Below are positions 4,822 to 53,800 of a stretch of 64,000 nucleotides of DNA, piece by piece (position 1 is the stretch's first letter; each line of letters opens with the position of its first letter). Made by a program: the position numbers and the translations under genes. This DNA is from Setoptus koraiensis. Its lineage: Eukaryota > Animalia > Arthropoda. The notes under the pieces are model-generated. The model saw only the letters and a list, made by a program, of their open reading frames with translations. It was not told where the DNA came from and ran no database searches. The stretch is taken from positions 12,214,001 through 12,278,000 of the forward strand of contig CM106586.1 in NCBI GenBank assembly GCA_048013815.1. Reading direction: 5' to 3'.

Positions 4822-6486
4822 ATGAGCGAGGACAACGAAAGCCAGGTAGCCATCACTGTGGCCACCAATGTCCCCAACAATGTCACCACTACCACCAATC
4901 TCTCCACTAATATCGCCACCGATATCGCCGCCTCCGGCGCCCCAACCAATGTCGCCTCTAATGCCACCTCTAGTGATGTCGCAGCCAGCAATTCTACTGC
5001 TACCAAGGTTACTAGTAATGTTGTTGATGTTACCAACAATGTCGCCACAAATGTCCCCAATTCGACTGTTACCGCCACCAATGCTACTGACTCTACGTCC
5101 ACCAATAGATATCTGATTGTTGACATTAGTGATGTTCTCAGCGAACGGGACCGAGTTAAATTCACAGTACATACCAAAACAAACGAACCGGATTTCGCCA
5201 AGCAACAGTCGTCCGTTGTTAGACAGCATGAAGAATTTGTCTGGTTACATGATTGTTTAGAGGACGACGAAAGGTACGCTGGCTATATTATTCCGCCCGG
5301 ACCACCAAGGCCAGATTTTGATGCCTCAAGGGAAAAATTGCATCGTTTAGGCGAGGGAGAAGGCAATATGACTAAAGAGGAATTTGACAAAATGAAAGCA
5401 GAGCTAGAGGCCGAATATTTGGCTACATTTAAAAAAACTGTTGCAATGCATGAGATATTTCTTCAGCGTCTTGCGTCACATCCAAAATTTAGATACGATT
5501 CAAATTTGAGAATATTTTTAGAATATGAAAATGAATTATCTGTTCGCAACAAAAGCAAAAAGGAACGATTAGCTGGCCTAATCAACAATATTAGCCGTTC
5601 GGCACAAGATCTAGTTATAACTACTTCACAGGCGGCTGCCTCGTCGGCAGCCAGGCAACGCCAGCTCACGTCAAGTGGTGATCAAAATGTTGGCGGTAGC
5701 AGTAGTAGTGGTGTTGGTCACTTGAATGTCTTTGGAACAGCATCACAAAACATTAAAAACAACAACAACAACAACAATATTAGTGATATAAATGATAACG
5801 AAAGCAAGAGCTTCGATCACAATAGCAGTGGCACTGGCGGAAGCATGAACAATGGCGATTTTTTCGAAAGAGAACGCCTATTCTTGGCTTTATATTACAA
5901 CAGTATTAAGGAAACAACTTTGCAAGCAGATAAAATGACCAGGGCACATAAAAATGTTGCGGAAAGCTTTCTACATCTTTCATCTCAGATTAATAAACTG
6001 GCCACAATGGAGGATCATGATCCCAGCCTTAATCAACTATTAACGAGGTTCGCCGACTATTTAGACAGGGCGAGAAAGATTGAAAATCGTATAGCATCAG
6101 ATGAGGACCTGAAATTGTCTGATACTTTTCGTTATTATAAGCGGGATACGGCAGCAGCGCAAGATCTCTTATCACGCCGATTGCGCTATCACAATGAATA
6201 TGAGAAGGCCAATAAGGCCTTAGATGCAGCCAGAAGTAGAAATAAGCAATTACAATATGCGGATGTCATCCAGAAACAAGCATGTGAAAACTTTCAAAAC
6301 ATATCGAAGCTCGCTAAACAAGAGCTTGCCGACTACAAGCAAAGACGAGTTGCAGCATTCAAGAAAAACTTTAGTGACCTAGTTGATCTCGAATTGAAAC
6401 ATGTTAGGTCTCATACACAATTGATCAAGGGTTGTCTAGATTCGTGCAAGGGTATTACTTCGTCCACATTCGTTCAAGCAATTTAG
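4822..6486 (+). CDS. SNX6: Sorting nexin 5/6/32 family PX-BAR protein, intronless, 554 aa
   Basis: Diagnostic PX segment VKFTVHTKT...[13 protein letters not shown]...[22 protein letters not shown]...[28 protein letters not shown], then a BAR segment [12 protein letters not shown]...[20 protein letters not shown]. Confidence 0.95.
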
Positions 6487-6611: not shown

Positions 6612-7829
6612 GTATGATTTATATACTGCATACAAAGATTTATAAAAAAGAAAACAATCTATTACAATGGTCAGATTAGATCTATTATTAAATATATAAT
6701 TATATGTTCACCTCTTTGAGTATATTTACATTTGAGGAGCTACGAGGATAATTATATAGAGTTGATAATAATAATTACATAAGAGTAATATATAGATGAA
6801 TAAATTCAATACAATGTATTAATCAAGACGATGGCCTTCTATTGGGTGACGCGCTAATTCATTCAGTCCGCATCAACAACATGCCACTGCTATTCAGATT
6901 TCCTGAAAGGACCTGTATAGATAAACATGCTTATGTTGGTTAATGGTCACACCATAATGTAGCTCGTCATCGTGTCCGTCTATAGGTATATATAGGTTGT
7001 CCTTTAATGAGTTAAGATTATGCTTTGTGAGACTGCGCAAAGGTATTCATTGAATCGTTTTGTTACATAACCCGAGCAGTTTGCTTGGCCATAGACAAGA
7101 CGAAGATAGTGATCTAGCCACATAGATTAGATAAGAAGATCAAATGTTAAGTGTTACGTAGTGTTGTGCTTTCGTGTGTCTTATGCTCGATTGAATAAGT
7201 TGAAAGATGTATCAATAAAAGCTAGTAACTTTTTGAGATCTATCAGCAGAAGCAGCACCAACAAACACTACTGTAACAGTAACTTTGTTGTCTCATTCAT
7301 CAGAGATATGTCACATGGCTTAAATATAGTTCCCACTAAAAGATCAGAGCCGGAGTGCGTAGTCATCATCTAGCAAAAACACACACACGTCTGCACATTT
7401 ATTTGGTGACTAGTAGATAAATGTAAATTTTGTTTATATCAAGCGTGAGAGAAAAGAAGAGAGAGAGAGAGCGCCACATTAACTATATTCAAGTAAACAA
7501 AAAAGAAGCCAACTAGCCAACTATTTAGCAAACACACTGGTTTTGAATGAGTCAGAGCGACCAACTTTGATATAGGCGATTGTCAACAGCTATCCAAATG
7601 CGACTAAAAAAGTTCAACACAAACAAATTTATTATTATCGTTATTGCAACTATTATTAGTGGTGCTTAAAAGTGGACATAATAATACAACAAAACAATAT
7701 TGCAATTATCATTGCATCGTAAAGTGACAAACAAAGAGAAAATAATAAAATTGAGCAAAGGGCGAGCGGTAAAAGTGTAATCATATTCTCTATATTGTGG
7801 CATAATTAAAACATAGAGTGGTTATAAAC

Positions 7830-9619
7830 ATGGTGATACTCATTGAGATATCACGTACTGCAACAATAATATTATTATTCCAATTGGAAGTACTACTATT
7901 CATAACTATTTGCCTGAATTGTGTATATAGCAGCTCTGTTCCTTCGGCATTCTCAAAACAAGATGCCCCCTTTTGGAAACGGCCCGGCTGTCATATAGTG
8001 GGTGAGTGTTAAGCCATGTGTCAATGTTAGCAGTGGGCGCAAATAACTAGATACTGGACGCATAGCGACTGTGCACAATGAAAAAATAAAGTAATTTGCA
8101 TGATGTTGTTGTTGTTGTTGTGGAAAATTGATTGAATGATCCTTTAAAACTTTCATCTATATATAAGGTCACACGCGAACAATAGCCATACCTGGCTGTG
8201 TCAAATTTGATCTGACAACAAACGCATGCAGGGGATATTGCCTGTCGTACTCACTGCCATCCATTGAGGATATCGGGCCAGCTTTTGGCGGCGACAATGG
8301 CAGTTCGGATGCAACGCTAACACCAAACACAAATGTTGCCGCTGTGAGTCGGAACAACAATCAGGGCCCTAATCGGGGTGCCAATCAGAGGTTAGTAAAC
8401 AAGCTGTGACTTTAGAGTTGTTGACGTGATCAACATAACAACAGTATTGAACAAAAAACTATGATTTTGATTTGAACTCAAAATATGCTTAAAATTCATG
8501 TAGCGATCAAGATGTTTCATTGGTTGATAAGATGATAAAAACACAAGCATTAAAACGCGAATATTTGGAATCTATTTTATCCTCGATATCCAACGTACAA
8601 AACACAAACAATACGGGAAGCAGCTCTAGTGGCACCATCAACAAAGATGCATCATTATCGGCGCAATTCCTCCAACTGGTGGCTTTGCAACAAGCACGTG
8701 AAAAATCGCACATGTTATCACCTAATTTAAACAGCGGTAGCGACATTGACAGCAGCAGCAGCGGCACCAGCAGCAGTAGTAGCGGTGCCGCTAGTGACAA
8801 TAATAATCATAATACTAACTATGATAAAATAAATACCCAATCAACGACGCTAAACGACGCACCGGAAATCGATCCTGATCTCATAACATCCACAGGTCCA
8901 ATAGAGGCCAATCTTGTGCCCTCAGGATCAAAGCAAGACATAATATCAATTGGACAATGTTGCAGTATGATAGAAACAGAATACGTGAGTACTAAAAGCG
9001 CAACTTGACTTGATTAGTCTTGGTGGGGGAGTTATCAAGAAAGTGCTATATTGCTTATTGCCTAATTGATATTTATTGTCGCATGGCACTGATATTGAGC
9101 AGCTATCAGAAGTCATCTTGCTTGCTGTTTACCCTGATTAGCTATACAGCTTAACAACAGATAAGCATCGTCACTATACTAATCTAATCTATTTATCCAT
9201 CCATCTTGACAATGGCTCTCCCTGGTGTCGCCATCAATGGTCATGACACGTCACTTATCGCGACGCGTCATGTATGGTGACGATTAACAATGCAAATGCA
9301 AACAAAACAAACAAATTATACAAAAATGAAATGAATGTGCATACTGTCGTCGTGTGGTCGTTGATCTTGTACTTATGTCATAATCGGGTTACGTTACTTC
9401 TCAATGTTTCGTTCGTTTTCCATTTGCATCTCCATGTAAACCATCACACATACTAAACACATCTGCATGTACATGACGCGCTTATCATGATGATCAATAA
9501 CCAAACACGAACAACAACAATATCAGATTAAGGTAAATGTCAGATGCGAAAATGGCCTAAGGGATTACATATTCAAATCAGCAAAGAGTTGCGAGTGTTT
9601 CTTCTGTAAGAAAATGTAA
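7830..9619 (+). CDS. GPA2: Glycoprotein hormone alpha-2 (GPA2, thyrostimulin alpha), 4 exons (7830-8001, 8168-8390, 8504-8984, 9527-9619), 322 aa
   Basis: Spliced protein: signal peptide, then FWKRPGCHIVG/HTRTIAIPGCVKFDLTTNACRGYCLSYSLPS, a long insert, QDIISIGQCCSMIETEY, and IKVNVRCENGLRDYIFKSAKSCECFFCKKM. This matches the invertebrate GPA2 pattern with all 10 Cys. All three introns are GT-AG and phase-compatible (phases 1, 2, 0). Confidence 0.95.
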
Positions 9620-12600
9620 TCTTAATATTGGCACTGTGTTTATCTGTTTGTTTGTGTGCACGTAGACACTCAAAGCACAAATGTACATTTACCTCGGATA
9701 TAACCTTTGCAAAAATCAGACACGAACTCCCATAGCGATAGGGATAGCTATAACACGTGCACAATGTGTCTAAATATAGTCTGCTATACATTATCCATGC
9801 GATGGAAAGGAACAATCACAACCACTAGTCTACTCCTACAACACAGTGTAAAGAAAAAGTAGAATAACGTCGAAAGAACCGACAGAGAAAGAGAGGGAGA
9901 GGATTACAGGTGCAGTCAAAATTGGGCAAACACGAGGCGAGAGAGCAACAAACAAATAACAGAAAAAAAAACAAACAGAATGAAAGAGAGAGAGAGAGAG
10001 CGAGCTGGCACCCAATTAAAAAATAAAACAAGAGTCATTTCTATATTTCACAAACCAGCAAAACAAAATGTGTGCTATATGTGTAGTGCCTCGCCAGTTA
10101 TGAATAATGTCTTAAAGCAAATAATTAAATGGAAAGTCATAATGACACTGTCTGAATTGTTCTCGCTGTCCTTTGTGTTTGTTTTGTGTGTTTGCCAGGG
10201 TTAGTGAGGCCATCAATTGCAAAATAAAAAAACCAACCAGCACCAAAAACAATCGCCATTTTTTCAGCCTCATGCCATATGGTACATGAAAGCATGATGG
10301 CGCCACCAGCACAATACATGTTATGTATAGAGTACAATAAAAACTCTAGTCTAGCTACACACTGGCAAGCTGTACGAACTGTAACGTAGCCCCACGTTGG
10401 GGTATCGTATGGGGTCCCCATTAAAGTTAATGTCGCTGTATTTGAAGCGCTGCAAAAGCGCTGTAAAGCAAACTAAAGAACATCATCTAAGGGCTAATTG
10501 AGTTTAGAGTGAAATTTAGAGAGATGCGTGAATATAAAATGCGCGCCAGATTGTGCGCTTGAGGCCGGGGGTTAGAGGAAGTGAACTTTACTTACGCTGA
10601 TGCATTCTAATAAGGTCGCGTCATTCTGAATATTCGCTCCACGTCAGACCCCATGTAAGACGTGTCTGACAGGTGGTAATTTGCACACCTTACATCATGT
10701 TCGGTTGTTGTGCAGCTCGTTGCCATATTTATTTTTCAGCATGTCATGTGGCTGGCCGAGAGCATGGGTGCAGCTTGAATTTGCAATGGCCCCCTTGTGT
10801 GTAACATGCGGCAGGCTATTTTTCGGTACAGTTATCAGATGAATCAGATCCCCTCAAGGGACCACAAAAACGCCCAAACCTCGCTGAAGGCCCAATACTA
10901 AATGTGGGCCCCGGTGCCAGCGCCCACACATTACACAACAACATCATCGCTGACGCTTGCTCTTTGGCATTGATTTCACCATTCCCGAAAGAGGCAGAGA
11001 TTCTCTCTTCCATTCCGTACAACATTTCTTTCGCTCAGTTTCGCTTCTCAATTAACATGCCAACTCGAAGGAAATCTGCATCTCATTCGACTACAAGCTA
11101 AAGGTTTACGTCACTGTTTTTTAGTGAGAACACACAACGAAATTGAACAATGAGCTAAATGAGAGATAAACGAATTATTCAAACCACCTATAACCACGGG
11201 GGGATAATTTACAGCGAAATCAGTGGTACGGGATCTCGAGTTAAAGCGCCGATGAAAGCTAGACGAGAGAAAATTCGTGCAGAAAATGTGCCTCCGAAAT
11301 GCTGTTCTTCAAGTGAAAAAAGGCCCCTTTTTCCTGTTCCTTCATGATTTTCCATGGAACTATTTCACTTGCACTAACCTAGCTAATGATCTGCATCCTT
11401 TATTTTTGCCTGAGTCTTATTCATCTTATCAAGTAAAGTTTGCACTATTTTAAGAAGCCCCCCCCCCTCTCCCCCCTAACTGGGCCACAGGAACTGGGCT
11501 GACATTTATCGAACGCCAAAAAATAGGCCCCTGCGTGAGACAGGAAGAGTGAGTGATGGCCGCCTTCTTTCTTGGCGGCGGCTGCTGCTATTTTTAACTG
11601 TTTTCTACTATTTCCAACCAGCATCTTGGCCACTTTTGAGACCATTTACCATCTACAGCACAGCAAATTTTGGTACTGAAATGATTGAGTAAGCCATTAA
11701 GAATATCTGTTAGCTAGTTAAAGAAAAAAGTTAGAGAGCGTTCTTTTCAAGACGCTGTCTAATATTGTTCTATTGTGTGGGCAAAACGGGAAAAAAGTAG
11801 TGGGCGTTCAACTTCATATCAAAGAAGCAAAGAAAATCCGTCTCGTGACATTATCATATGTTTTTGCGTTCCTCTACCAGCCAGTGTCGCCTATGGCTGG
11901 CCAAGTTAACCTGATATCTTTCGTGTTTGGGAGCTCTTCTATGGTTTCGTTGTGCATTAGCATCGATTGGTTGTAGGCGAGTGCTTCAGCGAGCCTGTGG
12001 GAAATTATCAAAAAAGAAAAACATGATGATACGATATGATAAGATCGCACGTTTGATATCGATATTGATATCGAATCATATTGTCGTTAACCTTTCAGGG
12101 GGGGGGGAAGTGATTTACGCAACTGTTCTTGTTGGATCTACAATCCTGAAGCAAGCTATTAGAGTGGTAGAGCATTCGAATGGTCATTTTTGGCAAATCA
12201 TCATCAGGATCGATGGCATAGATGGCATCTTACTTCCGTGCAGCTAACACTGTTCGCATTTCTATCACTTTTAATGGCAAAACTAATGGCCTTCTAATGT
12301 ATGTGCTAGACAGACTGATTGGAAATTATTCTCCTTTCCGCTAAATATACTAAACACGGTAGATCAATAATTGTCATTGGAGACTAGCTGTCAGCTCGGA
12401 TCATCATATAGCTCGATGTTTTTTTTTTTTTCGTACCACTAACTCGCGCAACAGCACCAGGCTCAGATTTGGCCGACTGACATTTACATCATGTTAGGGG
12501 CGACACACTAAATAATGTGCCAGTGACATCTCTTACAGATTGGCCAATGAACTCAAGATTGTGCGGACCCCGAAAATTATCATGAATCAAGGCTGTCACA

Positions 12601-15600
12601 CTGATTACGGCCGATGGTCATTCGAATATTCACCCAACACATTACTAACATTATTTGCATGCACGAATATCCATCACCCAAGTGTGCCATGAGCACTTTA
12701 GTCCGCTACAACGAATATCCTATTATGTGTAGGAGGTGTTAGTTGACAGCCTACAACTATAACTATAGCAATAGAAGCAAAATAGTAGAGAACAGTTATA
12801 ATGATAACTTTGATTCTATTACGTCACATGCAGCTAGTCAGTCTATCATGCCAACAGCAAACAATTTGTTTGTTGGAGATTTTCATCTCACTGGCAATTA
12901 GATTAAATCATTTAGCTTACCGTGTTTATTTATGAGCCTCTGCAATCTATTCGGAATGTTAATCAGTATTTAGTGCACCTGTGATAATGTATTCTATCTG
13001 TTACTGGTTTGTTGGTTAGTTCTTAGAGCAAGCCATCACATTAGATGAATTACTTTGTTAGAGTCCCACTAATACCTATTTGGGTCCTTCTTTGATGTGA
13101 AAAACCCATCGATCACCATCTTGGTAATTACTATCTGGCACTTCAGCAACGAACAAACAGACAAATTGACCAGCACAACAACATCGTGTAAGCGCCCAAA
13201 ATAGAGTATAGTTAATCAATATTAATGGGAAGATTATGGGGTGATCGAGTTTGCAGCTATAATTTGCATAATACTGATCATCCAATTGGCCCCTGGCTCA
13301 CAGACAGTTATCGACAACTATAGAATGCTTCGGCAATAGGTCAAACACTATCTTTCACCAGCCGTTTATATATGAACGACCTTTGCACACCCAATGACGA
13401 GTCAAGTCTTCGGAGTCTGGGGCTTTCGGGTTTGTCTGGTTTGTCTTGTTCCACGAAGCGGACCTCAACGAAGCTCCACACCGACCTATACGAACACGAT
13501 TGCTCAATACACTGGTGTATCCTAAAGCCTATTTTAGGATTTCCTCAGATAATTCATCATTTCTATTGAAAATACCAACCTTTATAGTATCACAGTATCT
13601 ATAACAATGCATATAATTGATGAGATCAATTTCGTAAATACAAACTGTCTGAAACTGTGCTGATTACATCATGCGGTAGTAGATATCACGATGATAGTAG
13701 ACATCTTAAGAAAAAATTGGTAACGTGGTTTTCCAAATTGACCTTCCTAGAACTACAATCACGAAAAAATCCATCATATTTTCCTTCACATACCACGCTT
13801 CAGTTGATTGTGTGCTTTCCATGTTCTCAACGGTTTCGAAAGACTTGACGAGAACTTTTCTCAATCATTTGCTTCAATATCAGATGTTACTTATACCGAG
13901 AAGTGCAGGCTATTAAGGTTGAGTATTCTAGGTCCGGGTCTTTTCATCGACGTTTACTTCATCTAGAGTATGCTAGGCATTCATTTCGAGCCATATCCTT
14001 CTTTCAACTCATTTCTGCCGTGCACTTTTTATAGATCGGATTTCTCGATGCAACTTCTTAATTTCCTTGGTGATATACTTGTGATACGCTCTTGCTAGTT
14101 ATTATGTATCGTTTTTCTGGTCTAGCTTGATGTTCATTATTAATCAGAAGCTGACGTATAGTAGTTTAAAGCACTCATTAGCCTCGGGGACAGAGAATTT
14201 ATTTTGCCGCCTACAAACCAATTCAGAGTCGTTCTTGATAGAACGCATACAGGTCAGTTGATCCCCTCACACCTATCTCCTATACAGTTTTTTAGTTCAA
14301 GGAAAAAGACTGGGGAACCCGATAACTTCAGGATAAGCTGAAGGAATCCGATCGACTGAAAATGTGCTGAATAAATTCCAAGAGATCATTTACTGCAGAA
14401 AAAGCAGAGATTCCACAAATCTCTCTTATTCTCAGTAACCGCTGAACGACTTATGACAATTTCTGATAAGGAGATTAGACATCAAAACATTCTGAGTCAC
14501 AAAATCGAACACCACCAGACGGAATTATTATCATTTTGGAAAGCTTTTCGAACACTGTAATAATTCTGAGAAAACAAATTCCACAAAATAAGGCGACTGC
14601 ATGATAATGTAAGGAGCTTTCGGAAGAACATCCGAACCAACAAAACTCAAGAAGCGATAAAAATCAACTATCCACCATCAACCATGGGTACAAAAAAAAT
14701 ATGAAAAAGCTAAATTGTCATGCTGGCGTCGAGCAAAGAGAGGCCCTCAGCAGAGCGACTTGCAATTGGTCTATTCTCGGCAAGGCAGAATGCCTGGCCA
14801 AGCTAGATGAAGTCGTTCCCATTATGGGTGGAACAAACTAGTTCCGAGGGGCGGTAAGCTTCCACCACTCACCATTGCCAACAAAAATGAGCACTCAGAG
14901 GAGAAAATTTTGGTTGCCGCCTCCATAGTGTCTCGATGAAGCAACCATTTTCTCCTTAGCGGTTTCAATGACTGACTATTCTATTCGACGATGGTTTGAA
15001 GTGTCTGGTGGTACCGAAAATTCCTCTCAATGAATCGGACAACTTTTGTCTTGTTGTCACAAAGAAATTTCGAAATCTTAATTTATTGAGAGAAGAAAGA
15101 GGTTTAGTTGGATTTTTGGAGGCTCTCTTTGCAGAAATTTATTGTTGGCCCGAGAAAAAATTATGAAAAAAAGTTTGCGAGTTCAGATCCAATGTGAGCA
15201 CGAACACACACCAGATGCTGGTCTGTTGGTATGAATATGAATGCGATCTTCATAACAGGGTTGTATTTTTCTATTAAAACTTGTTATAGAGCACGTGAGT
15301 CTCATAGTGTAATTCATAAAAGACCTCAAGAAATATGAACAAATAAAATTAAATAGACAGACATAAGGTCCGCACATCAATAAATGGAATACGTTTCAAT
15401 TCGTGGAATTCGAGAACTCGTCCCATCTATTAATGTGAAGACTTTATCTCCTCACTTAAGAAGTGCCTAGTGGTGGTAACCTCTCATGAGCATCTGACAA
15501 GTCGAAAAAATACCTTGCATCCAAACATGGTCGAGCAATCTCTATCTTACCATATGTCATGAAAACGATCTGAGTCATGCGTAATTTTGCTCATAATGGT

Positions 15601-16636
15601 AATTATTTTTTCAAGCAAGGTCCTATCTCCGAAGAATGAGACAATTTTCCTCCAACATGATTATGATACTGTATACTAGAGTGTTGCACCCACCCAATCA
15701 AGGGACCGTGTGCCTTTTTATATGCCCTTTCACATACTTTCATTATGATGTCCAAACACGTTAGGTGGACGACCTGCACGACCTGTACCCCTGCATTGTT
15801 TGTGTTAATCGGATCTACTGGTCAACACAATGACCATTTATCAAAATGAAAAAAGCAATCAAATAGATTCTCCGACTACAAGGTGTGTAAACAATGTAAC
15901 AGCCTCTTCCATTCTTACAACTGATTGCTTCAACACATGGATGAACTCTACGTGAGACTTAGATGTCTCATCATTTCTAGACGTTGATGATGTTTAGTCA
16001 CGTAGACTCAAGGTTTGACCTTTTTTCCCTTCAGAATTCACTCAGTTCACTTTTCTGAAATATAAATTGATTTTCGGGGTATTTTCGCCCGTCACGAAAG
16101 AATTTCTATACTCGAACACTACAAATAAGTTGTAACCAACCACCCATACCGGTACATGGTAACATTACACAAGCAACTAATACATCGATTTTTGGGACGA
16201 AAAAAATTAGTTTACAACTCGGGTTGGCTATATCATTTAGTCACATCATATTCGGCATCTATGTTATAGAGTTTAATCCATCAATTTTACACGTACACTG
16301 CATTAGCAGTAAGGTTTTTACAGGTGTAAAACTCGAGTTAGGTATGATATGAGTGTTATAGACATTTGATAACGGCGAAATGTGATCAACAACAACAAAA
16401 TCCACTAAGAGCTTACATATAATCCACTCTGGACATGACTTCAAAGCAGACGGTTAACATTTGTTTCTAGCCAACCGATGTTCTTATTTATCTGACCAAT
16501 TGATCTAAAGAAAGTTCTTTTTGTTTGTTTGTTTGTTTTGTTTGAAGAATTATCAGATTAGATACTTTCATAGCAGTACATTATGATGATTTAAGGTTGG
16601 TTAAGTTCACATTGTGAGGAGTCAGATAGATGATAT

Positions 16637-18944
16637 TTATGGTAACGACGGGGGCGGATCTACTACTAATCCGCCCCGACAAACAGCATTAGAAGAGGAA
16701 CATTTTTGACAAGCGCAGTTAACGGCATCCATATAGTGATACAATCTCAACTCGGGATCAACAAATGATGACGTGCATTGTGAAAGTGTCGTCCTTCTCC
16801 TGATCCTATCCTTGTGAACACAAACGTAGTGTATAGACTTTTTGTGGGGGAAAAGCCAATCCGCGATCTAGATGTGCAATATTATTATTGTTTGTTTTTT
16901 TTTTTTTAGAAAAATGTCGCATACAAAAAATGAAAGAGTTGTTATAATTTGAATATCAACGACGATGGTAATACTTTGTTATTGGATTTAGTCTGCTTTT
17001 TCATCTTTTTCAACCACTCATACTCCCACGAGTTTCGGTAAATTGAATTCGCTGTTAAGCCCATCGAGTCTACTTTGTTGCTCTCATCAAATGTTTCGTA
17101 GATTCAAATGAAAAACGAAATCATAGTAATGCGTCAGCCTCTACAGCAAAAAAAAATCTGCGATTCCAGATAGAATTATTTGTCCTATCAATAGATCACA
17201 AGTAAAGTAGAAGAAATCGATGTCGTTCAAAGAGAAGACCATTGTGTAGCAGGCTTACCTCACCAGAATCGCATCGGCCATAACAGACATTAGCAGTTAT
17301 CTGTCCCCAGCATTTGTTGCCTTTTGTATCTGTCTTGACCGCTCTGTAAGTATATTTTCTCGTTTTACAAAGCACAGGATCACCCGTTTCTACCTCGAAA
17401 CCCAGATTTGACATCGGTTTTTCTGTAGAAGATACAGGTTTCGGTTGAGGCTGTTGTTGTTGTTGTTGTTGCCATTCCAAGAGCCGATCAATGATTGCAT
17501 CTCGTTCGTTTTCCTTGTGTAAATTCGAGGCGCTGGCTAGCTGTGGGCCTTCATCAGATGATATCGATTGCTGTTGTTGATGTTGCGAATTATTGAATCT
17601 GTCCGATTGTCCAGTCTGCTCTGGTTCAGACAATTGATAGCTGCTGCTGATGATAGCATCAGGTAATAATGTCATAGATATATTATTGGTTCGATGATTG
17701 GGAGATGCCGAGTCTGGGTTTATAATGGCATCGCTCTGAATGATAGTTTGATCTTGATTCTTCGATGATCTATTACTTTTTCGATCGATATTATCATCGT
17801 CAGTTATCTGTATTGGTGATTGTTGCATGCTAGTGGGCATACCAATTGGAGGCACAGGCCACAATAAGCTAGATCTAAGCTGTCTGAGTGAAGATGGAAC
17901 GTGGTCTTGAGGTAATGAAGACGACGTGTCGAGTAGATCTGATTTGAGTGGTCTTCTAACACGAAATTTGATTATCTGATTGCCATGCTTTGTTTGTCTG
18001 ACAAAAGCCGGCTGTTTTTGATAATTATTCTTTTTATTGTTGTTATAGTAGCCGTTTCTCCATTGCAAATAAACATTGCGATTTCTGTTGCTGCTGCTGC
18101 TTCTGTCGTTGTCAATTATTTGTTTTGTGTGTTTTATATGTTGTTTATAGGGGTGCTGATTATATGTACTCGTTTCTTGCTGCTGTTCGCTCAATCGGTC
18201 AAACAATTCGTACCGATCGTCAGATTCTTTCATTTGAGCATAGTCTCCGTCATAAGCCGGCGCATAGCTTGTTGATGATCGTTGTGGGCGAGTAAACTCT
18301 TGCAATAAATCTGGATCTGTCTCTAGCAGATAATTCAGAATTGTCAATTTTTGTTGCTCTTCGCGGCCCATAAACGGATGATTCATTGAATTCTGCGAAC
18401 CCTCATTGTTATCATTACTGGTCTTTCTGTCGCTATCTTGATCAATTTGATAGTATGGTTTTGTTTCATAGTTGTTCAACCCTTTTTCTGCAACCAGTTG
18501 CATTGGATCTAGCACTCTCAATTGTGGGTCATGATTCTTCGTTTTGTCTGGACTGTCCAGAGTTAGAACTTTGAAACTGTTTAGTTTGATGTCGTCCAGT
18601 TTATTAGTTTTGTTTGTTTGTGAGGTAGGTTGTTGTTGTCGTTGGTGCAATAAATATGGAGTTTCGTCGAGTAACTGATACTCAAATGAATGAAAGTCGT
18701 CTCGTTTCTTGTTTTCATCGGTGCCGCTTATTCTTGTCGTGTCAATGTTGTTAAGAATTATCAGAATCAAAAAAGCAATTAACGACGATAGAATCCAAGC
18801 AGAAGATGTTGATCTAGCTCTAAGCAAATGATAATGAATGTCTTTTCTTCGTTTCAAACAACTTCTGGGTTTTTCCGAAGAATCGCACAAATCCATTAGA
18901 GTGACCGCTGCAAGGATAGAATGTTTTGTTGCAGAGAAAAGCAT
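16637..18944 (-). CDS. GPB5: Glycoprotein hormone beta-5 (GPB5, thyrostimulin beta) with very long N-terminal pro-region, 2 exons (18944-17259, 16867-16637), 638 aa
   Basis: Exon 1 ends CKTRKYTYRAVKTDTKGNKCWGQITANVCYGRCDSGE at a GTAAGC donor. Exon 2 (absent from the ORF track) follows a CTAG acceptor and reads IADWLFPHKKSIHYVCVH...QC...YHYMDAVNCACQKCSSSNAVC. This is the GPB5 signature with 10 Cys. Confidence 0.94.
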
Positions 18945-23872: not shown

Positions 23873-26800
23873 AGGTGGCGGCGTTGCCGCTCTAGTCTTT
23901 GGGTTGGGTGCAGGACCAGTGAGGTGTGGGGGGTGAATGGGGCAGCTTGCACAGCATGCAGGATCGCGGCGGGGGAGGGGCGGGAGGTTGTGTGTGGAGC
24001 GTGGGTGGTGTGACGAGGGGTGCGGGCGGGGAGGGGCGGTGAGCAGGGGGCGTGGTGACGGGCGCGGGTACACGCACGTGTATACGGGCGGGTGGCAATG
24101 GGGTGATAGCGCAGGCAGTCGTGGGGCTGTGGCGGGTTGATGCTCCTGCGTGTCAGGATGGGTATCAGGGGGTGGGGGAGGGGTTGGGCGTGCGTAGCGG
24201 GTCAGAGCAGGGTCATGAGAGTGGTGGCAGGGGGGGTAGGGGCGGGTGGTAAATGGGCGGGCGTCTGGGTGTGCTGGGCTGGCTGGGGGGGTGGGGGGCC
24301 AGGGAGTGGGCTTGAGGCTGGGGACGGTCTGTCGCCAGTTGTTGGCCTCTGGTTTGCACAGCGGTGTGATCTTGGGGTGCTGGGGAGGGGGCGGTAGAGT
24401 CGTGTTTCCTCGATAGTTAATCTTCGTTTATTAGTGTGTTCTTCTTACTCGAAGTGTCTTTTGTTCTTTATGGTCTTATTGCAAGTCAGTTATTCTTTTT
24501 TGTGTTTATTCCTGATTCGGTGTTGTCCTTTTTCGTGTGTGCTACATGTGTTGCTGGAGTCGATATTTTTTTGAGTCGATCCGACGTGCTATGAGTTTTA
24601 CAGCTTCTTGTAGGCGCGGGTAGGCGGGACGGGGGAACGGATTGCGGGGGGTGGTCGCCCGGGCAAGTTAGGGGGATCACGACCATCGTTGGGGGGGACA
24701 GAGGGGGGTACGCAAGCAGGGGTTAGTTGGGCATGGGGAGTGGGGTGTAAGGTGGGGGGTGCGCGTGTGGGGGGTTGGTGGGAGATGGGGTGTGGGTGCG
24801 GGTGTCGAGGTACAGTGGAGTGCGGTGTGCTTCAGTCTTTTTTGCGATCTAATGTTTTTAACGTGGAGAATCGTGAGGGCTTGTCATGGCCGGTGTTTTT
24901 TGGTGAGTTTTACGTTGTCGTTGCAGTACTTTTTGTGCTTTGCTATCGTCCGCGTTGGGCGCTACGAACAGGGGGTGGGTAGCGTTTGTTTTGTTGTATT
25001 CGAGTTTGTGCGGCTTATTTTTAAATGGGGTACATGTATCCATCGGTTGTTTTCCCCTGCGTTCTTTTTTAACGTGTACTGGCGGATGTTCTCTCCGTTG
25101 TTTCTGTTTTCTTTCTTAGTATTGTTTCATTTCACTTTTGCTTTGCGTTTTTTCTTTTTGTGATTTTTACTACGGCTTAAGTTTTTTTTCTGCGTTGGTG
25201 TTTGTTTTGGTGCGGGGCTGGAGGGTGGGTGGTTTCGGGGGGCGGAGGGATGTGAAGTGCGCGGGAAGGGGGGGAAGGGAGGGTGCCAGTGGTGGGCGCC
25301 GGCTGGAGAGGGGGTGCGGGGGGCATGGTTGCGGATTGTTGTGGGGAGTGGTGCTGGCGCTGCACGGTTGGCGGGCGCGGGTTTAAGATGGTTGGGGTAA
25401 TTTGAGGGGGTAGGCGCCTGACCAGGCGGGGGAGAGAGGGGTCGGGAGCGCGGCTGTGTGGGTGGGTGGGTGTTGTGTGTCGTGGGTTTTGTTGAGTTGG
25501 CAGAGTTGAGTGCGGTCTGCGGAGGGAGCGAGGGGTGCAGGGATGGGGTGGGGCAGGGGAGTGGTTGGATTGCGTTAGTCGTGCAGGCACGGTGGGGTCC
25601 GTTTGTGTTCGTGGGGTCGGTGTTGTAGGGTGGGCTGGGCTGGGGGTTCGGTTGGGTGGGGTGGACTGGTTTTGTTGATAGGTGCGTGTGTCTAGCTCGG
25701 ACGTCCCTCGTCCGGGTGGGGGCGCGAGGGGAGGGTGAGTCCCCGGATGGCAGTAGTGGGGGGAGTTGGGGGGCGGGTGGGAATGTGGACGGGAGGGTCG
25801 GGGTTGTGTTGGGGCGGGGGGTGTTGGTGGGGTGCTATTTCGTTCTTCATTTTAAGTTTAAGCCCCGTTTTGAGTTGTAGTCGTCATGGCCTCCTTCGTT
25901 TTTGTCGTGAATGTTTATACACTTTTGACTTTTCGGTTTTGTTCTGCTGTGCGTCGATGTTTTGGTGTGTCTGTCATTCCGCTGATGCGGGGGTGACGTG
26001 GTGTGCAGAGAGGTGGGCTTATTTTGTGTGCTGTCTGTGACTTGAACTTGGCTGATTCTCGTCGTGGAGGGAGGGTGGTAGGTGGCACGGTGCGCAGGGG
26101 CCCAGGGGGTCTGCCAGGTGAGTGGTGGGGTGCGGGTTGGATCCGTGGGTAACCCTGGTTGGGCGACAATTACTGTGGTGGGGGGAGGCCGGAGGGTGCG
26201 TCGGAGGGGACGGGAATGGTGGCGGGCTGGTGGGGGGTGGGGGGGGGTAGGTGGGGTTCGTTGAGGCCGGGCGGGGGTGAGTAGTATGGGGGTGGGGTGG
26301 GTAAGGGGTTGTGGGGTAGGGGTGGGGGGTCGGGGAGTTGGGGGTGGGGGCGGGGGTGAGGGGAGGTTGGGACGGATGGCAGAGATGGAGGTATGATGGC
26401 GGGTATTGTGAGTGGACAAGGGCAGCCACAAGGGTAGGGGCGGGGGCACAATTGGGGGGAGTGGGTCAGGGGTAGGTGAGGGGGGGTAGTTGGTGGAGGC
26501 GCAGGGGATGAGTGGGGGGGGGAATGCGGGGGGGTCGGGAGGGAGAGTGGGGTGTGGGGAGATTAGGTGGGGGTCGGTGACTCTGGCTTCGATGGGACGT
26601 CCTAGTTGTGAGCATTGGCCGTCTAGTTCGTGGGGGAGGCTGTGTGGGCGTCCTCTGGGGGGCGGGGGCACATTGACTTCTTTGGGTTCGGGTCGTGGAG
26701 CTCTGGCACGGGTGACGATTCTTCGGTGGGGCTTTGGGGTTGCGTGTTTTTTTCGCCTGGGGGGCGAGTTGTGAGGCTTTTTTTGGTTGGTGTTTGGTCC

Positions 26801-29290
26801 GTCGCTATTTGTGCATCCGGCTGGCCGGTTCGTGTTCGGGTGTTTCGGTACTATAAAGCGTGTCCTGTTTGTTATTGTGTTGCACTTTCATTCGTGGTGT
26901 ACTTTAGGCTTTTGATAGTTCTGTTCTCGAAGGTGTTGAAGCAGGGTGCGGGCAATTCGTTCTTGATCCGTTTTTTGTTTTATCTTTATTACCCCTTTGT
27001 AGATAATATAAGGAGGGTGAGGGTGGAGCGTGAGGGGTGCGTCTCGATTTGGCACGGGGGAGGGAGATCGGAGCATTAATGTGTGCACACGGGATGGGCC
27101 GCGGTTCGCATGTACAGGGGGGGTTTCGATTGGCCAGCTGATCCTTATGCTGTTTTTTAGGGCTCGGGGGTCGGTTTGGAAGGTTCCTCTGCGTCTACAT
27201 TCCTTGGAGTTGGGTTTTAATCATGTATTTGGATACCCTAACGATAGCTTACCCTTTGGGGGTGCGATTTGGTTTAGTATTTATCTGTATTTTATGGTTG
27301 TCGGATCGTTCAGCGGGCTGAGTAGGCGGGCGAGGGATGGGGTGGGACATGGGTAGGGGAAGGTAGGAGGGAGGGTGGTTGGGGTGTGGTGGTGGGTGTC
27401 GGTATGACCACTGTGGGACGGGGGGTCGCAGGGCGGGGCAAGTGGGTGTTTAAGTGGGGGGGGGGGATGTATTGGGTGGGTTCAGGCGGGGTGGGCTTTG
27501 TCCGTCTCTCGTTGGGCAAGGGAGCTGCTTTGTTGTTTGATTAAGGCTTTTGGGATTGATCGGTGTGCTAAATATTCCCGTAACGTATGCTACGATTTAA
27601 TGTTAGTTAATGGTTGTTTTCGTGGTGGGGAGCCGGGGGGTTGGTCGATGGGGTGCGAGTTGTGATTCTGGCGTTTCATCGGGTGTATTGGGATGGTGTG
27701 TCTTGAATTTCACGTTATGTTGGTGCGTAAGCGAATGGGCCGTTGTGTGGACGTAGTTATTAGTTGGGCTGGTTTGCGGCGGTTTTTTGGTTTGTTTCTT
27801 TTTGTCTATTCTTAGAGATTGATTCTTTGTAATCTTTTACTTTTGTTTGTTGTCTATATTTTATTTTTTGGGCTGGTGTTTCGTGGGTGCGTAGTGTGAG
27901 GGCGAGGGCTGGGGCGGGGGCTGATGCTTAGCGCTGTTCCTAAGCGATTGGTCCGTTGTACGAATGTGTGGCGACCTCGGTGATTGGTAGGCGGTAAGCA
28001 CGGATCGCTGTGAGTGGGTAGAGGGGAGGGGGATAATTGGAGGGGCACGACGGAAGCGGTGCGTCTGTTGTGCGTGGATGGTCACGCCTGGGTTTATTGG
28101 TCCTGTCACGGGCAGGTCACGGGTGGGAGGGGTGGGGTGGGGACAAGGAGGAGGCGACGGATTGGGGGTGATGGTTAGGACCAAAGCGTAGTGGGAGCGC
28201 GGCGTAGTGAGGTCTGGGCGGGGTGGCTTGGGGCGCGATGGATGGGTGCGGGTGGTGGAGGGCCAGGCTGTCTTCGGGGGGGGAAGAAAAGGGGGCTGGA
28301 TGGGGGCTGGGGGGGGGATCGGGGGGAAGGGTGGTGGATGTGCGGGAGTTGGGCGGGGTGAGGTGTAGTCACGTGGCAGGCGGTGGGGGGTTTGTCGTGC
28401 AGGGCAAGTATGTGAGAAGTGGGTGTGCGGGCACAGGGGGGGGGGAGGTGGGGGGGGTTGCAGTGGGGTTATGCGTGGTGAGTGGGGGGGGGGAGGGTTG
28501 TGGAGGGTTTAGGAGGTGGGGTGGGTGTCGGGCGTGGTGGGGTTTACGTTTACGTGGTAGGGTGTCTGTCGGGCGTCTGCCGACGTTTGCGCGTGGTTTC
28601 GTAGGCTTGGTCTGTGTGCATGGGGGGTTTTGCGGGGGGGGGTCAGTTGATGGAGGAAGGGGTTTAGTGTGTGGGAACGGGGCACAAGGATTGGGTGGGG
28701 GGATGGGTGTGTGCATCGTCGGGGGGGGAGTGGGTGGGTGAGTGCGTCAGTTAGTCAGGTGGAGGGGGATGGATGGGTGGGTGTCGCGGTTCTGGTTTTG
28801 AGTACCCGGAGGGAAGGGGCGGCTGAATTGCCCGCTTAGTAGCGGCGTGTATACGGGGGGTCGGGTGCTGGGGGGTCGATAGTGTGGGTTGTGTGCTTTA
28901 TGTTATCTTGCGGTTTATAGATGTGTCGTGGATTTTTTTGTCGTTTTTCGTCCACGTGTGGCCTTATTTTGGAATATCGATCTTGAGCTGAGTGCTTCGG
29001 TTGTGGAGTGGTGTGCCGTTTTGGCGGTTAGGTCGGTCATATGTGGCCGGTCGATTTTATTTTGTTGGTCCCTTCGAGGTTATTGGTGGTGTATGAGGGT
29101 GTGTGAGCACGGAGTGGTTTGCCACTTTGTATGTCGTAGGGGTTTGAGTAGACGTAGTGGCGCGCAGCCGAGTGAGGGGGGGAGTCTCGGGGGGGCCTGG
29201 TGGAGTGGAGTGGTGAGAGGCACGGGAGATGCGCCGGGATGTTTCCGTGTTTTTTTTCGCTCTTTTTTTTTTCTTTTTCTTTTTTTTCAT
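23873..29290. other. G/T-skewed aperiodic low-complexity block, probably low-accuracy read or gap-fill artefact
   Basis: Composition switches abruptly at the gap edge to G-run-rich, A/C-poor sequence on the + strand. There is no repeat period, and only Gly/Val/Trp (+) or Pro/His/Thr (-) junk ORFs. It is unlike the AT-rich flanks. Confidence 0.75.
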
Positions 29291-29342
29291 TCTTTTAGCG
29301 GCTCTTCCTTTGGTTCTTTGTATTTATATTTGTTTACTTTCT

Positions 29343-29504
29343 TCGAAGTTGTTCCGATTGATGGATTTGGAAAGAGAGCGATACTCGGGAAGAATATCTT
29401 ATCTGATAAACGACACAAGTTTGGAGGACGTCTTTCTCACATTCGCCCGGTTTTTCGAGCACAATGGCGTAACAAATGACACGGTAATACCAATCGCACC
29501 ATGA
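29343..29504 (+). CDS. C-terminal fragment of an ABCA-subfamily ABC transporter
   Basis: SKLFRLMDLERERYSGRISYLINDTSLEDVFLTFAR resembles the conserved ABCA tail (LF..ME......Y.VSQTTLEQVFL.FA), followed by a stop at 29504. The upstream body is missing, replaced by the G-rich block. Confidence 0.65.
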   Translation, partial: SKLFRLMDLERERYSGRISYLINDTSLEDVFLTFARFFEHNGVTNDTVIPIAP

Positions 29505-30721
29505 CACTATATTCACACCACGAATCCTCATGTATAACAAATGAAAGCTCACGTAGATTCCTTACTTAAATTTATTGTTAACAGTTACATCTGCTTTATT
29601 CACTGATTGTTTGTGTTGTGGTAATATGTATCTCCCACAAGGAAATAATTTTCAAATTACCAATATAATCCAGTTAGAAACATTAAGAAAATTAAATATA
29701 GTAACAATATAAATATAAAACGGCACTATCGATCAAGATGGCGATACAAATATTAGTTACATTGATAGTATGGAGGGTAGTTTGTCAAAAATATATCTGT
29801 CAATATCTATCACTATTCTCTAATTTATTGTATTCTGCATCAGGCAGAATCTGTTGAACCTGATGGTCTTCAATCTCATCCATTTTTCACATTCTATTCA
29901 ATTGATTGTCTCCATAGTGTAGTTCGTAGCAATATATCATGCTCTACAGAATTTGATTATAGTTCATTCTTTTATGAGCAATTCGAACATGCAACGATTG
30001 TTGAATATATCGGAAGATTAACATTACATCAGTAATGCTATAATTTGTATCACACCCGGTATAATACTACTGACACAATTAGTATTGTAAAATCCTTTGA
30101 AAATATAGGCCGAGTCGCGCATTGCATTTCACTTCCGTTTACCTAACACAGAACCACAACTTTCATTGAAGCGCACAGAACAATTGTATCTCGATGTCAA
30201 GCTTCTTATGTAATGTATCATGACCAGACACATTAATCTTTCTCTCTGATACACTCTTTGTCTTTATTGACAATAGACTCATTCAAGCGATCGGCTGATT
30301 TAATGTGATCAAAATTCATCTTGTAGAGAAAAAAATTTCTGCTCGATCGATAGACTCACGCATGACGAAGCAGAGAAAAAAAACATATTGATTTGAAACT
30401 GACGTTCATGTTTATTTTTTGAATGTTCACCATGCGGTACAAGTGTACGATGGTTTACTTCGTAGTTGTAGATTCGTGGATTGATTATGCACCGTGGAAA
30501 GTCTCTAGTATAAAAGCAACTGCCACGAAGAATGAGGCACAAAATAATCGAAATACTGTTTCAATTTAATGAGACAACACAAAATGCAAGTTTGGAATTC
30601 TATTTCCTCTAGATGGAATACTCTTTACGGCATGGAGATCATGTACGTAAAGGGTTGATCATCAAAAAAATAATCATCGCCTTATTTCTAGAATTTGTTT
30701 CTAGACCATGGGCTATATCAG

Positions 30722-50891: not shown

Positions 50892-53800
50892 TGTGGTGAT
50901 AAAAGAAAAAACAGTAAGTCTTTGTATGGTGTAGATATATTGCACTCGTTAGGTAGTATATTGAGTGCAGTGGTGTGTCAATCAACTAACGTTAAGTTAG
51001 TTAAGCGATCACGAAGTCACTGATCTGTTTGGTTTGGTGTACACTGTGCTATTGTATCGGTAAATCAATGATAATTACCAAGCGAATCTAGAGCGAAAAG
51101 AACAGTTCAACACGTATTTAGTGTAATGTATCTATGACAACTGACTAGTCAGTCGCTGCACAATTGCAATGAACGCTGTCGGGCTTGGTGCGGAACGCGC
51201 GACCTGGTTGACAGGATAGTGTGATGGGATTCTCTGTCGCTGTCACGACGTCACATGTAGGCATTTTTTTTTCTTCTTTCGACACAAACATTATTATTAC
51301 AGGTTGCTTTTCTATTTTTCATACCTGCTCGTGTCCGCATCGCAGATCGGCTGATGCGCGCTATTTCTGGCCACATTTACTGGTCTAAAAATAGACCAGA
51401 TACCCATGCACTGCACAGCAATATTTTCATTATTTTCATCATTTTCATAGGCGTGTAACAGTCGGAAAAATACATACTGCAGTCACTGGAGTCCAGTGAT
51501 CGGTTTTCACGCTGAAACGGCATGACAACGAAATGTTGCCGTTGGTGGTGGCCAGTTTCATCAAGTAATTACACTGACCACGTTTGTGAATTTGGCCGCT
51601 TGCGGACGGCCAGCATGGTCGCACACAAACACTGACAAAATGTAGATGAGACGAAAAATTAAATCTCGGTGTTTTGCGGCGACCTTTTAGACTTGTCACA
51701 GTGGCAGTCGTCATGCTGATTCGATTGGCCTGCTTAGCATTGGCGACACACTCCGACTTCTTGTGCCGGCGGAGTTTTGGTCCGGCCGGTCGGCCAGACC
51801 AGAACTTCCGCTGGCACAACGCTCTAATCTGACGGGACCGGCCGAACACAACAATCAGCTCGTTGTGGCTGCACCCAAAATGAGGTTCCCCGAGCACTTA
51901 TTTCGCGCAAATGCCAGCACAAGTGCGCGCGAGGCCCACGGCCCATCAAACGCAAACCAACCGTATAAACATTGGCGAGGAACGTGACCATTCGCTAATT
52001 ACCAGCAGACGTGCCCCATAATTTTGATGGTCGAGCTTTGTTGGGGCCCGGTTGTGGGCCGGCACACACACACACACATTATGCAAAGTAATGTCCGCTT
52101 GGCAAACACGCCTCGACAAGTATCACTAAAAAGTGCATGTTTGAACACTTTTCAGCTAGCTCATCCCAAACAGAATGGCGGCCCAACACTGTGACTTGCA
52201 TTCGAAATGCCAAATAGACTCAACATTTGCATAGCGTTGGCTCGCCAAGAAGCTGGCCAGATTGCTGCACCTGGCCCCCCCCCCCCGTTTGTTTAGATTG
52301 GGTTGGGTCGGATAATTTTGGCAGCCGTGCAGTGGTATGGTTTTTCTTGTTTTGTGTTGTGTTGTTGCGCAAATAAATGGCCACGTACCAATTGACGATT
52401 GTGTCTCTAAATGGCCCGACGGAGTTTGAAAAATTGCACCAGTTTCAAGAGCGTTTCAAGTATTTCAAGTGCCTCAAGTGTTTCAAGTGTTCCGGCTGGT
52501 CCGGGTGTTTGCTATCATGCATGGCTAGTTATCACGAGAGATCTATTTTTGTTGTAGGCCATCGAGTTTCGTTCAGGCATAATGGCATTATGGCCAGACA
52601 GTTTGCTCTGATTATTCGGCTCTCGCCGGCATTATGATGACCGTTTGCCTTTTCATAGGTCGAACGGAACAAACTTTGAACAATAACTCTGCTGCTGCTG
52701 CAATTTATTTTTCCTTCTCCTGTCAACATCATTTATGAACGTAGAGAGAGAATACGACATGTTTGAAATATAAGGGGATATTTCAAGCATGCTGCTAACT
52801 ATCGTGCCAGCCGTACTAATAACCGGAGGACACACAACGGCGCTGCAAACTATTTGTATCAGATTGGATTGGAATCGATCAAAACGTTTCTCAAAACTGG
52901 TGCTATTAGAAACTATTATTTACCATTAGCTATCAAGATGGAGATAAATCACATATCATACACACTGCAATCACTGTTGGCTCGGCCATTTCTCACTTCT
53001 CCCAAGTCCATCGTTGCTGGCAATACCAGTGCAGCTGCTGCCAACAGCCGCACTTTTCCAATGTATAAAGTCCGGCAAATTCAGCCAATGCAGTTAGTCT
53101 GAGCAAACGGACCTCTTTTCTTTCAACTTTCAACTCTCAACTCTCTGACAAAACAACTAACTGTGTGCTCGTTTGCAACAGACATCACGCGCAATTGAAT
53201 GTAGTTGTTGGAAAAAAATTTGTATTATTATTATTTGCTCTTGGCTTGCTGTTTGGCCGCAAGCAAACTTTTACTTTAAGTATGCTCAATGTTTTATGTT
53301 TTATGTTTTGTTCGCTTCTCATTTCTTTGTGGGCGCCCATTCACCCTTCGGCCTTTATTGCATGCATCCTTTCCGTTGCAAAGACCATCGTTGAAAGGAT
53401 TTCCGACCCTCACTTTCATAATGGACACTGGTTGATGCTAATGTCGGCCCTCTCGGAATAGCAACTCTAGCGACCTATCTCGGATGGGAAACCATCAGAG
53501 GCTATCGAGCAAGTGTCCAAGCATTTTTTTTCTAGTCTCAATCACAAATGGTACCAATTATATCCTTCGTCTTCTGGGATCATTTTTCTATGATGTAACA
53601 TGATGGGTTTAAGAACAAGACACGATTTGATTCCAACGCGACGCTTCTGCTGAAATTCTTCGATGAAGACACACTTCGGAGACCAGAATAAACCATCTAG
53701 CTAATACCCGGAGTGACATTCCGATTCAAATCAATGGTTTAATCAATAGAAAGATGGTCACAATTAAAATGTGATTTGAGCACTGTTTTAATAGTTTTCG

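Follow-up and report, generated by a model that had tools for sequence, protein, structure and literature searches.

Why should both subunits of thyrostimulin, the glycoprotein hormone formed by GPA2 and GPB5, be greatly enlarged in a mite, and what are the additional segments? The question is raised by a stretch of 64,000 nucleotides from Setoptus koraiensis (GenBank assembly GCA_048013815.1, contig CM106586.1, positions 12,214,001 to 12,278,000 of the forward strand; hereafter the window, with positions counted from its first letter), in which a GPA2 gene on the forward strand and a GPB5 gene on the reverse strand lie tail-to-tail with 7,017 bp between their stop codons. Our preferred answer, to which we give a probability of roughly one half, is that these are ordinary thyrostimulin knots with added segments that are mostly disordered, evolve fast under weak constraint and occupy positions permitted by the fold, and that these segments were inherited by a whole clade of mites. 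The rival explanations are, in falling order of probability, a convertase-processed pro-hormone, a type II tethered ligand, a clasp holding the dimer together, and an artefact of the gene models.

The window is eukaryotic, with about 38% GC around the hormone locus. The GPA2 exons were found by reading the DNA and translating candidate exons, which gave a model of four exons and 322 amino acids (aa) in which every intron is GT..AG and the frame is kept (Table 1). Ten cysteines follow the signal region (residues 54, 68, 78, 82, 284, 285, 299, 314, 316 and 319), among them a CC doublet and a C-terminal C-x-C-x-x-C. The stretch between Cys4 and Cys5, which we take to be loop 2 from what is established for alpha-subunit structure, has a spacing of 201 residues in the window as against 25 in locust GPA, some 176 residues extra. 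The GPB5 model, on the reverse strand, has two exons and a predicted product of 638 aa. Its open reading frame (ORF) of 582 codons (17196-18944) reaches into the start of the knot and is left at a GTAAGC donor after ..CDSGE, and the ten knot cysteines lie within residues 526-625. A first knot Cys at residue 526 is unlike the arrangement in a small secreted subunit, where the signal peptide stands shortly before the knot; there are about 500 residues more than usual ahead of it. The predicted joints 8001/8168 of GPA2 and 17259/16867 of GPB5 recreate motifs that are uninterrupted in relatives or in locust, the former giving ..PGCH.VGHTR.., which is continuous in locust GPA. An earlier, sequence-only reading of this locus had given the same two lengths, the strands, a spacing of about 7 kb and ten cysteines for each subunit, all of which are correct on the rebuilt models, and the linkage that it described is borne out, with the pair tail-to-tail here and in four contigs of related mites (L001, L005, L007 and L012).

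Table 1. Positions of the hormone genes, their additional segments and the neighbouring sorting nexin gene in the window.
Feature	Position	Strand	Content
GPA2 exon 1	7830-8001	+	Start codon, hydrophobic signal region, Cys1 (..WKRPGCHIVG); donor G/GTGAGT
GPA2 exon 2	8168-8390	+	Cys2-Cys4 (HTRTIAIPGC..NACRGYC) and the initial 36 residues of the loop insert
GPA2 exon 3	8504-8984	+	Remaining loop insert, then ..DIISIGQCCSMIETEY (Cys5-6)
GPA2 exon 4	9527-9619, stop included	+	Cys7-Cys10 (..VNVRCENG..FKSAKSCECFFCKKM, then stop)
GPA2 loop-2 insert, coding span	8281-8936, split by intron 8391-8503	+	
GPB5 exon 1	18944-17259	-	562 codons, one ORF; N-terminal extension and Cys1-4 of the knot (residues 526-558)
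GPB5 N-terminal extension	17370-18944, residues 1-525	-	
GPB5 hydrophobic segment	18741-18809, residues 46-68	-	Kyte-Doolittle maximum 2.27 at residue 46; AlphaFold2 (AF2) helix 48-71
GPB5 exon 2	16867-16637	-	Opens IADWLFPHKKSIH.., runs to the stop; knot Cys5-10
SNX6 (PX plus Vps5/BAR sorting nexin)	4822-6486	+	Single ORF, 554 aa; conserved neighbour of the hormone pair

Homology identifies the two genes as GPA2 and GPB5 orthologs, and each retains an intact 10-Cys knot. Database and fold queries were made at the exon level, and GPB5 exon 2 (76 aa), searched against 1.84 billion representatives, matched 112 family members. The named GPB5 matches include the spider thyrostimulin beta-5 (P0027, 160 aa, E 1.9e-11, 48% identity), that of the silkworm Bombyx (P0030, 156 aa, 4.2e-11) and an entry from Aceria tosichella (P0009, 557 aa, 1.3e-17, 64%). 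The comparison with chelicerate and insect GPB5 that the sequence-only reading had proposed aligned all ten cysteines with those of spider, silkworm and Aceria, and the ten Cys columns remained invariant when two further GPB5 were included. No seat-belt is present, since only 13 residues, without Cys, follow Cys625. With exon 2 alone, the Pfam family Cys_knot (PF00007) scored 23.9 bits against a gathering cut-off of 24. For GPA2, a text search for the motif TNACRG located two published sequences. Locust GPA (Table 3 of PMC3061863), with its 25 residues between Cys4 and Cys5, is identical to the window protein at 27/41 and 25/42 positions of two knot segments (52/83, counted by hand) with all Cys aligned, and a shrimp GPA2 fragment (PMC7212414) shares ..PGCH.VGHTR.I.IP.C..F..TTNACRGYC with it.

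Other searches were less informative. Pfam searches with the GPA2 exons and with single-exon ORFs of relatives found no Hormone_6 and only a sub-threshold DAN match (PF03045, 15.4 bits vs 22), and sequence and profile searches of the PDB at the level of exons returned chance matches only, with nothing for GPA2. A word-index search with the whole 582-aa GPB5 ORF gave no match, poly-Q and poly-S words dominating, and one with the final 114 aa of exon 1 gave a single candidate without a score. Exact look-up of the GPB5 ORF product found no record, and a feature search of the ESM Atlas returned generic cystine-knot clusters at 0.83, under the trust level. At the Bombyx GPB5 locus GPA2 was not found within 10 kb, and no LGR1-type receptor gene was found in the window.

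Whether the additional segments are coding was addressed with ORF statistics, in which in-frame stops were compared with 2000 dinucleotide shuffles. The 525-codon GPB5 extension contains 0 in-frame stops vs 26.7 expected (0/2000 shuffles) and 26-42 stops in its other five frames, and the exon-3 part of the GPA2 insert contains 0 vs 7.0 expected (1/2000 shuffles). Frames open by chance are excluded. RNA-like contigs from runs X7, X3 and X2, of which X7 and X2 belong to separate studies, were compared with GPA2 only. They cover exons, with a depth of zero in all three introns. Contigs of X7 are identical to the window and show the joints 8390/8504 and 8984/9527, both GT..AG, the second of which is also seen in an X2 contig from a slightly different strain or species; X3 and X7 contigs span 7700-7986, the region of exon 1, and an X7 contig spans 8183-8390. 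An exon-only, spliced pattern is that of cDNA, which places the GPA2 loop insert in the mature mRNA. In a 57-nt X7 contig 8390 is joined to 8624, an alternative acceptor that keeps the frame, drops 40 codons (8504-8623) and yields a 282-aa isoform; the AG at 8624 has a matching AG in the related contig L009, and the skipped piece is the first predicted helix. A splice skipping the insert from a donor at 8343 (/GTGAGT) was considered and rejected: the donor looks better, but it is in phase 0 without a phase-compatible acceptor before QCC, and the RNA contigs use 8390.

The enlargement of both subunits claimed by the sequence-only reading thus stands at the protein-coding level, through ORF statistics for both and spliced contigs for GPA2. 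Two of its predicted junctions were recovered in RNA (8390/8504 and 8984/9527), while 8001/8168 lies without contig cover. It had also named transcripts that skip the inserts as evidence that would count against it; the spliced contigs retain the GPA2 insert, and the 282-aa isoform lacks 40 codons of it.

The same evidence makes it highly improbable that intron or untranslated sequence was taken for the inserts and that both proteins are in fact of normal length. What speaks for such an artefact comes from GPB5, which is known from genomic sequence alone and offers an acceptor-like site at 18905 and an in-frame Met511. There, on the reverse strand (18905-18935), a polypyrimidine tract and a strong cag/C acceptor-like site fall within codons 11-12 of the ORF, and because an upstream exon could splice in at 18905 the predicted 5' coding end and start codon of GPB5 are provisional. 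A downstream start at Met511 was itself rejected, there being no hydrophobic signal after it, and a protein begun there would lack a signal peptide. Against an artefact stand also the GPA2 insert in spliced contigs of two studies, the five relatives in which insert and both knot flanks share an exon, the 525-codon open frame where 27 stops are expected, and the 557-aa Aceria GPB5 entry, which has signal peptide, extension and knot in one protein.

Selection on the insert was measured as the ratio of nonsynonymous to synonymous substitution (dN/dS, Nei-Gojobori) against L009, a Logan contig that carries GPA2 exons 1-3 and whose SNX6 is 87% identical to that of the window. With dS at about 0.6 throughout GPA2, dN/dS is 0.012 in the knot (63 codons), 0.10 in the signal region and 0.32 in the insert (169 codons), where the contrast of synonymous with nonsynonymous change gives p = 5e-7. 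All GPA2 indels between the two keep the frame, and identity in the intron that separates exon 2 from exon 3 is 45%, essentially unalignable, vs 79% for the insert-coding part of exon 3. The GPA2 insert is under purifying selection, laxer than that on the knot.

The enlargement is not confined to this species. The approximately 25 best GPB5 matches (50-64% identity) are all 275-655 aa long with a C-terminal knot, and normal lengths appear only further down the list. In a tree of the knots the long forms cluster (7 changes vs 25.7 with shuffled labels), and the nearest rows to the window are long forms, its exact position being unresolved. Loop 2 is long in each of the six relatives that yielded a GPA2: the Cys4-Cys5 spacing is 145 in L001, 145 in L005, 148 in L007, 120 in L010, 113 in L012 and 190 in L009. 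In L001, L005, L007, L010 and L012 the insert lies in a single exon with both knot flanks and therefore is not an intron there. Further upstream in L001, L005, L012 and L013, another ORF carries the GPB5 signal sequence, and the true GPB5 lengths in those relatives therefore exceed the ORF lengths. SNX6 adjoins GPB5 in all fetched relative contigs except L011 (synteny is listed for L001, L003, L006-L010, L012 and L013). Where both hormone genes are placeable (L001, L005, L007, L012), GPA2 comes after GPB5, tail-to-tail, and the pair adjoins SNX6; in the window both genes are inverted together, and the order is therefore SNX6, GPA2, GPB5.

In a SNX6 tree the window and L009 are sister to 25 sequences whose long branch falls within Acariformes, next to the trombidiform mites, and the GPB5 of Aceria (Eriophyoidea) nests among those of the relatives; because of both placements the clade would be eriophyoid-like. 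Both enlargements are common to this whole clade of related eriophyoid-like mites. Equally long orthologs across mites, which the sequence-only reading had expected to undermine its case, are thus the rule in the clade of this mite, with one such protein in UniProt, and its case is weakened in part. L005 and L010 both come from Logan SRR29837433 and represent different SNX6-GPB5-GPA2 loci with GPB5 ORFs of 493 vs 367 aa; the sequenced material must therefore contain either two related species or diverged copies of the locus.

How the segments themselves evolve was examined next to their predicted structure. A phmmer search for homology between the GPB5 extension of the window and those of relatives found nothing. 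Among the relatives, extension identity is 43-62% where the knots are 86-91% identical and falls to about 27%, the level of noise, at 66% knot identity. A few islands recur in their extensions (YRVSAEEAKRFL-like, LLVVPKRT, DLDGGQ, and PLEC before the first Cys). AF2 gave GPB5 exon 1 a mean predicted local distance difference test score (pLDDT) of 42.8, with 423/562 residues below 50; helices are predicted at 2-17, 26-42, 48-71 (hydrophobic), 194-209 and 477-493, and the hairpin at 527-555, predicted with confidence, corresponds to the first knot loop. For GPA2 exon 3 the mean pLDDT is 48.2, with weak helices at exon residues 2-34 and 48-70 and the rest disordered; these helices coincide with the blocks best conserved against L009.

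No cleavage site of the basic type (RxxR or KR) stands directly before the knot or flanks the insert in the window proteins. The residues before Cys526 of GPB5 read ..NLGFEVETGDPVL, with no basic pair within 20 residues, and the sole furin-type site of the protein, RVRR at 328-331, is followed by Pro and lies 195 residues upstream of the knot. The GPA2 insert ends in ..SGSKQD in the window, KQ in L009 and ER in L010, and KR or KRR is found just ahead of DV(I/V)SV(G/S)QCC in L001, L005, L007 and L012. The sequence-only reading had suggested a processed or membrane-tethered pro-hormone, which would be possible although the cleavage sites that it needs are missing in this species. As to processing, furin- or prohormone convertase (PC)-type enzymes would excise the segments and leave a near-normal GPB5 and a two-chain GPA2 joined by knot disulfides, comparable to removal of the C-peptide of proinsulin. 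The KR/KRR of those four relatives would suit it, as would the conserved basic islands in the GPB5 extensions of relatives (LLVVPKRT, ..RNxRR) and the RVRR of the window GPB5. We nevertheless find it doubtful: the insert ends without KR in the window, L009 and L010, its start has no basic site in any species, the KR within the window insert (ALKREY) is absent from L009, and in GPB5 no basic pair comes within 20 residues of Cys526, RVRR being distant and followed by Pro. Because no flanking cleavage site is conserved, the secreted proteins of this species most likely retain the segments or lose them only in part.

Residues 46-68 of GPB5 form a putative signal peptide or signal anchor. They follow a basic N-region of 45 residues (KRRK, RAR), and the choice between the two readings separates ordinary secretion from a tethered ligand, in which an uncleaved type II signal anchor would let a disordered stalk of about 450 residues show the knot together with GPA2 at the surface of the cell, where the ligand could signal through LGR1 by contact or be shed later. 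That the hydrophobic stretch is about 20 residues long behind such an N-region, with no evident small-residue cleavage site within 7 residues past it, would be expected of an anchor, and long N-regions recur in relatives (about 73 residues in P0007, about 46 in P0045, about 70 in the upstream ORF of L001). Ordinary signal peptides with short N-regions and cleavable-looking ends (..CSAQ or ..CYAQ) are seen, however, in P0016, P0009 and the upstream exon of L005, the start codon of GPB5 is provisional, and the anchor would hang on one hydrophobic segment. A tethered ligand is unlikely on this balance.

The predicted helices would allow another function: those in the GPA2 insert could contact those in the GPB5 extension and so stabilise the heterodimer, in place of the seat-belt that GPB5 lacks. 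They match the best-conserved blocks of the inserts (GPA2 exon-3 residues 2-34 and 48-70; GPB5 194-209 and 477-493), both partners are expanded throughout the clade, and the alternative splice, which removes the first helix, could tune pairing. Such a clasp is a hypothetical arrangement that we judge very unlikely, given the low confidence of the helices (pLDDT 50-65), extensions that are unalignable across the clade, and similar inserts in SNX6, which has no such need. The elements could also work as one device, with helices clasping the subunits, a GPB5 anchor displaying the dimer and the splicing of the first helix serving as a switch, to give a tethered or regulated ligand in place of a diffusible hormone; we regard this as quite unlikely.

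The explanation we favor is one of ordinary knots with tolerated segments. Folding and pairing of the knots would follow the pattern of other animals, with an LGR1-type receptor as the target and with the hydrophobic segment of GPB5 bringing the protein into the secretory pathway. The additional segments would be spacers that change quickly and are mostly disordered apart from some short helices, and they would sit where they can be tolerated: in GPA2 at the tip of loop 2, the end remote from loops 1 and 3, and in GPB5 at the free N-terminus. They would have arisen from a general habit of the lineage of gaining low-complexity inserts, weak constraint having come later. SNX6 offers a view of that habit. 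Its protein carries an S/T/N-rich N-terminal extension of about 90 residues and an insert of about 65 residues between PX and BAR, and clade relatives have SNX6 of 570-690 aa vs 385-430 aa in tick, spider-mite, Halotydeus and house-dust-mite. Because a housekeeping protein expanded too, the parallel expansion of the hormone partners emphasized by the sequence-only reading loses some of its weight, although both partners are indeed enlarged, and their parallel growth may partly reflect a general lineage tendency.

Several observations weigh against this explanation. The growth of the hormones (2.5-fold for GPA2 and 4-fold for GPB5) far exceeds that of SNX6 (1.35-fold). In none of the seven species does the loop insert of GPA2 fall to 85 residues or fewer, and its conserved blocks (LESILS, LQLVAL, DPDLITSTGPIEANLVPSG) suit a specific function better, as does an insert dN/dS of 0.32, which fits passive tolerance less well. 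The basic motifs of relatives (PKR-T, RNxRR, KR before DV.SV.QCC) resemble convertase sites. Low pLDDT is weak evidence of disorder because AF2 was run on single sequences, and the long GPB5 of this species, read from the genome, begins in a frame that contains the acceptor-like site described above.

Comparison with known systems places the pair within thyrostimulin while setting it apart in size. Thyrostimulin of insects, spiders and vertebrates is a ligand of LGR1/TSHR-type receptors (PMC9545775). The window pair resembles it in its 10-Cys knots, linked genes and a GPB5 without a seat-belt after the last Cys, with a knot identity of 36-51% to named GPB5 and of about 63% to the locust GPA knot segments. 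It differs in that named GPB5 are 156-160 aa long with the first Cys at about 24-37, whereas in the window it is residue 526 of 638, and in the Cys4-Cys5 spacing of 25 residues in locust GPA vs 201 in GPA2 of the window. A further likeness is the 'Glycoprotein hormone beta-5' of Aceria tosichella (UniRef100_A0A6G1SNB4), which also has a signal peptide, a low-complexity extension of about 390 residues and a C-terminal knot and is 64% identical to the window in exon 2 and 51% in the knot; its extension is unalignable to that of the window and has conserved islands (YRV..EEA.R.., LLTVPKRT) and extra Cys, which are missing from the window protein. The name of this entry is automatic, and we found no paper that discusses it, nor any published description of an enlarged GPA2 or GPB5.

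The beta subunits of human chorionic gonadotropin (hCG) and equine luteinizing hormone/chorionic gonadotropin (LH/CG) gained a C-terminal peptide of about 30 residues via read-through into the 3' untranslated region (PMC8522476). Like the window proteins, these are glycoprotein-hormone subunits with a serine-rich disordered extension outside the knot; the window additions are 170-520 residues long and are placed N-terminally in the beta subunit and within a loop in the alpha subunit. The layout of a C-terminal cystine knot behind a long N-terminal region is also found in the pro-proteins of the TGF-beta family, neurotrophins and Spaetzle and in mucins and von Willebrand factor. The pro-domains of cystine-knot pro-proteins are folded and end in RxxR directly before the knot, whereas the GPB5 region of the window is predicted to be mostly disordered and its knot has no adjoining RxxR. 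Loop 2 of the alpha subunit is the loop around which the seat-belt is wrapped in the classical hormones, and it lies near the receptor.

Beyond the hormone locus, the window contains six paralogous single-ORF genes between 22430 and 47344 on the forward strand (starts at 22430, 30695, 34060, 37532, 42274 and 45830), with products of 492-578 aa and 32-61% pairwise identity. They have hydrophobic N-terminal parts and no Pfam match and look like a lineage-specific tandem family. A strand-skewed G/T-rich block at about 24000-30000 has a GC content of 0.51-0.58, a GC skew of +0.44 to +0.53 and an AT skew down to -0.45; Tandem Repeats Finder at score 200 gave no tandem array there. The ORF at 25847-26671 (-) reads as Pro/Thr-rich low complexity. 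Two further ORFs on the reverse strand, of 886 aa (48285-50945) and 1541 aa (59370-63995), lie in a GC-richer region of the window (GC content 0.46-0.52) and have no Pfam match; the former encodes a hydrophobic segment and then Pro/Ala-rich low complexity.

Few signalling proteins of bilaterians are as conserved in size as the subunits of glycoprotein hormones, and how GPA2 and GPB5 stay paired without a seat-belt is an open question. With a loop-2 insert of 90-180 residues in the alpha subunit and an N-terminal region of several hundred residues in the beta subunit, the clade offers a natural experiment in how much enlargement the fold and the receptor interface can accommodate. Because it appears to consist of eriophyoid plant-pest mites, the system is a possible lineage-specific target. 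If the segments are functional, they would represent a new way to regulate or tether a hormone. If they are merely tolerated growth, they would show how far low complexity can reach into a compact, disulfide-knotted hormone.

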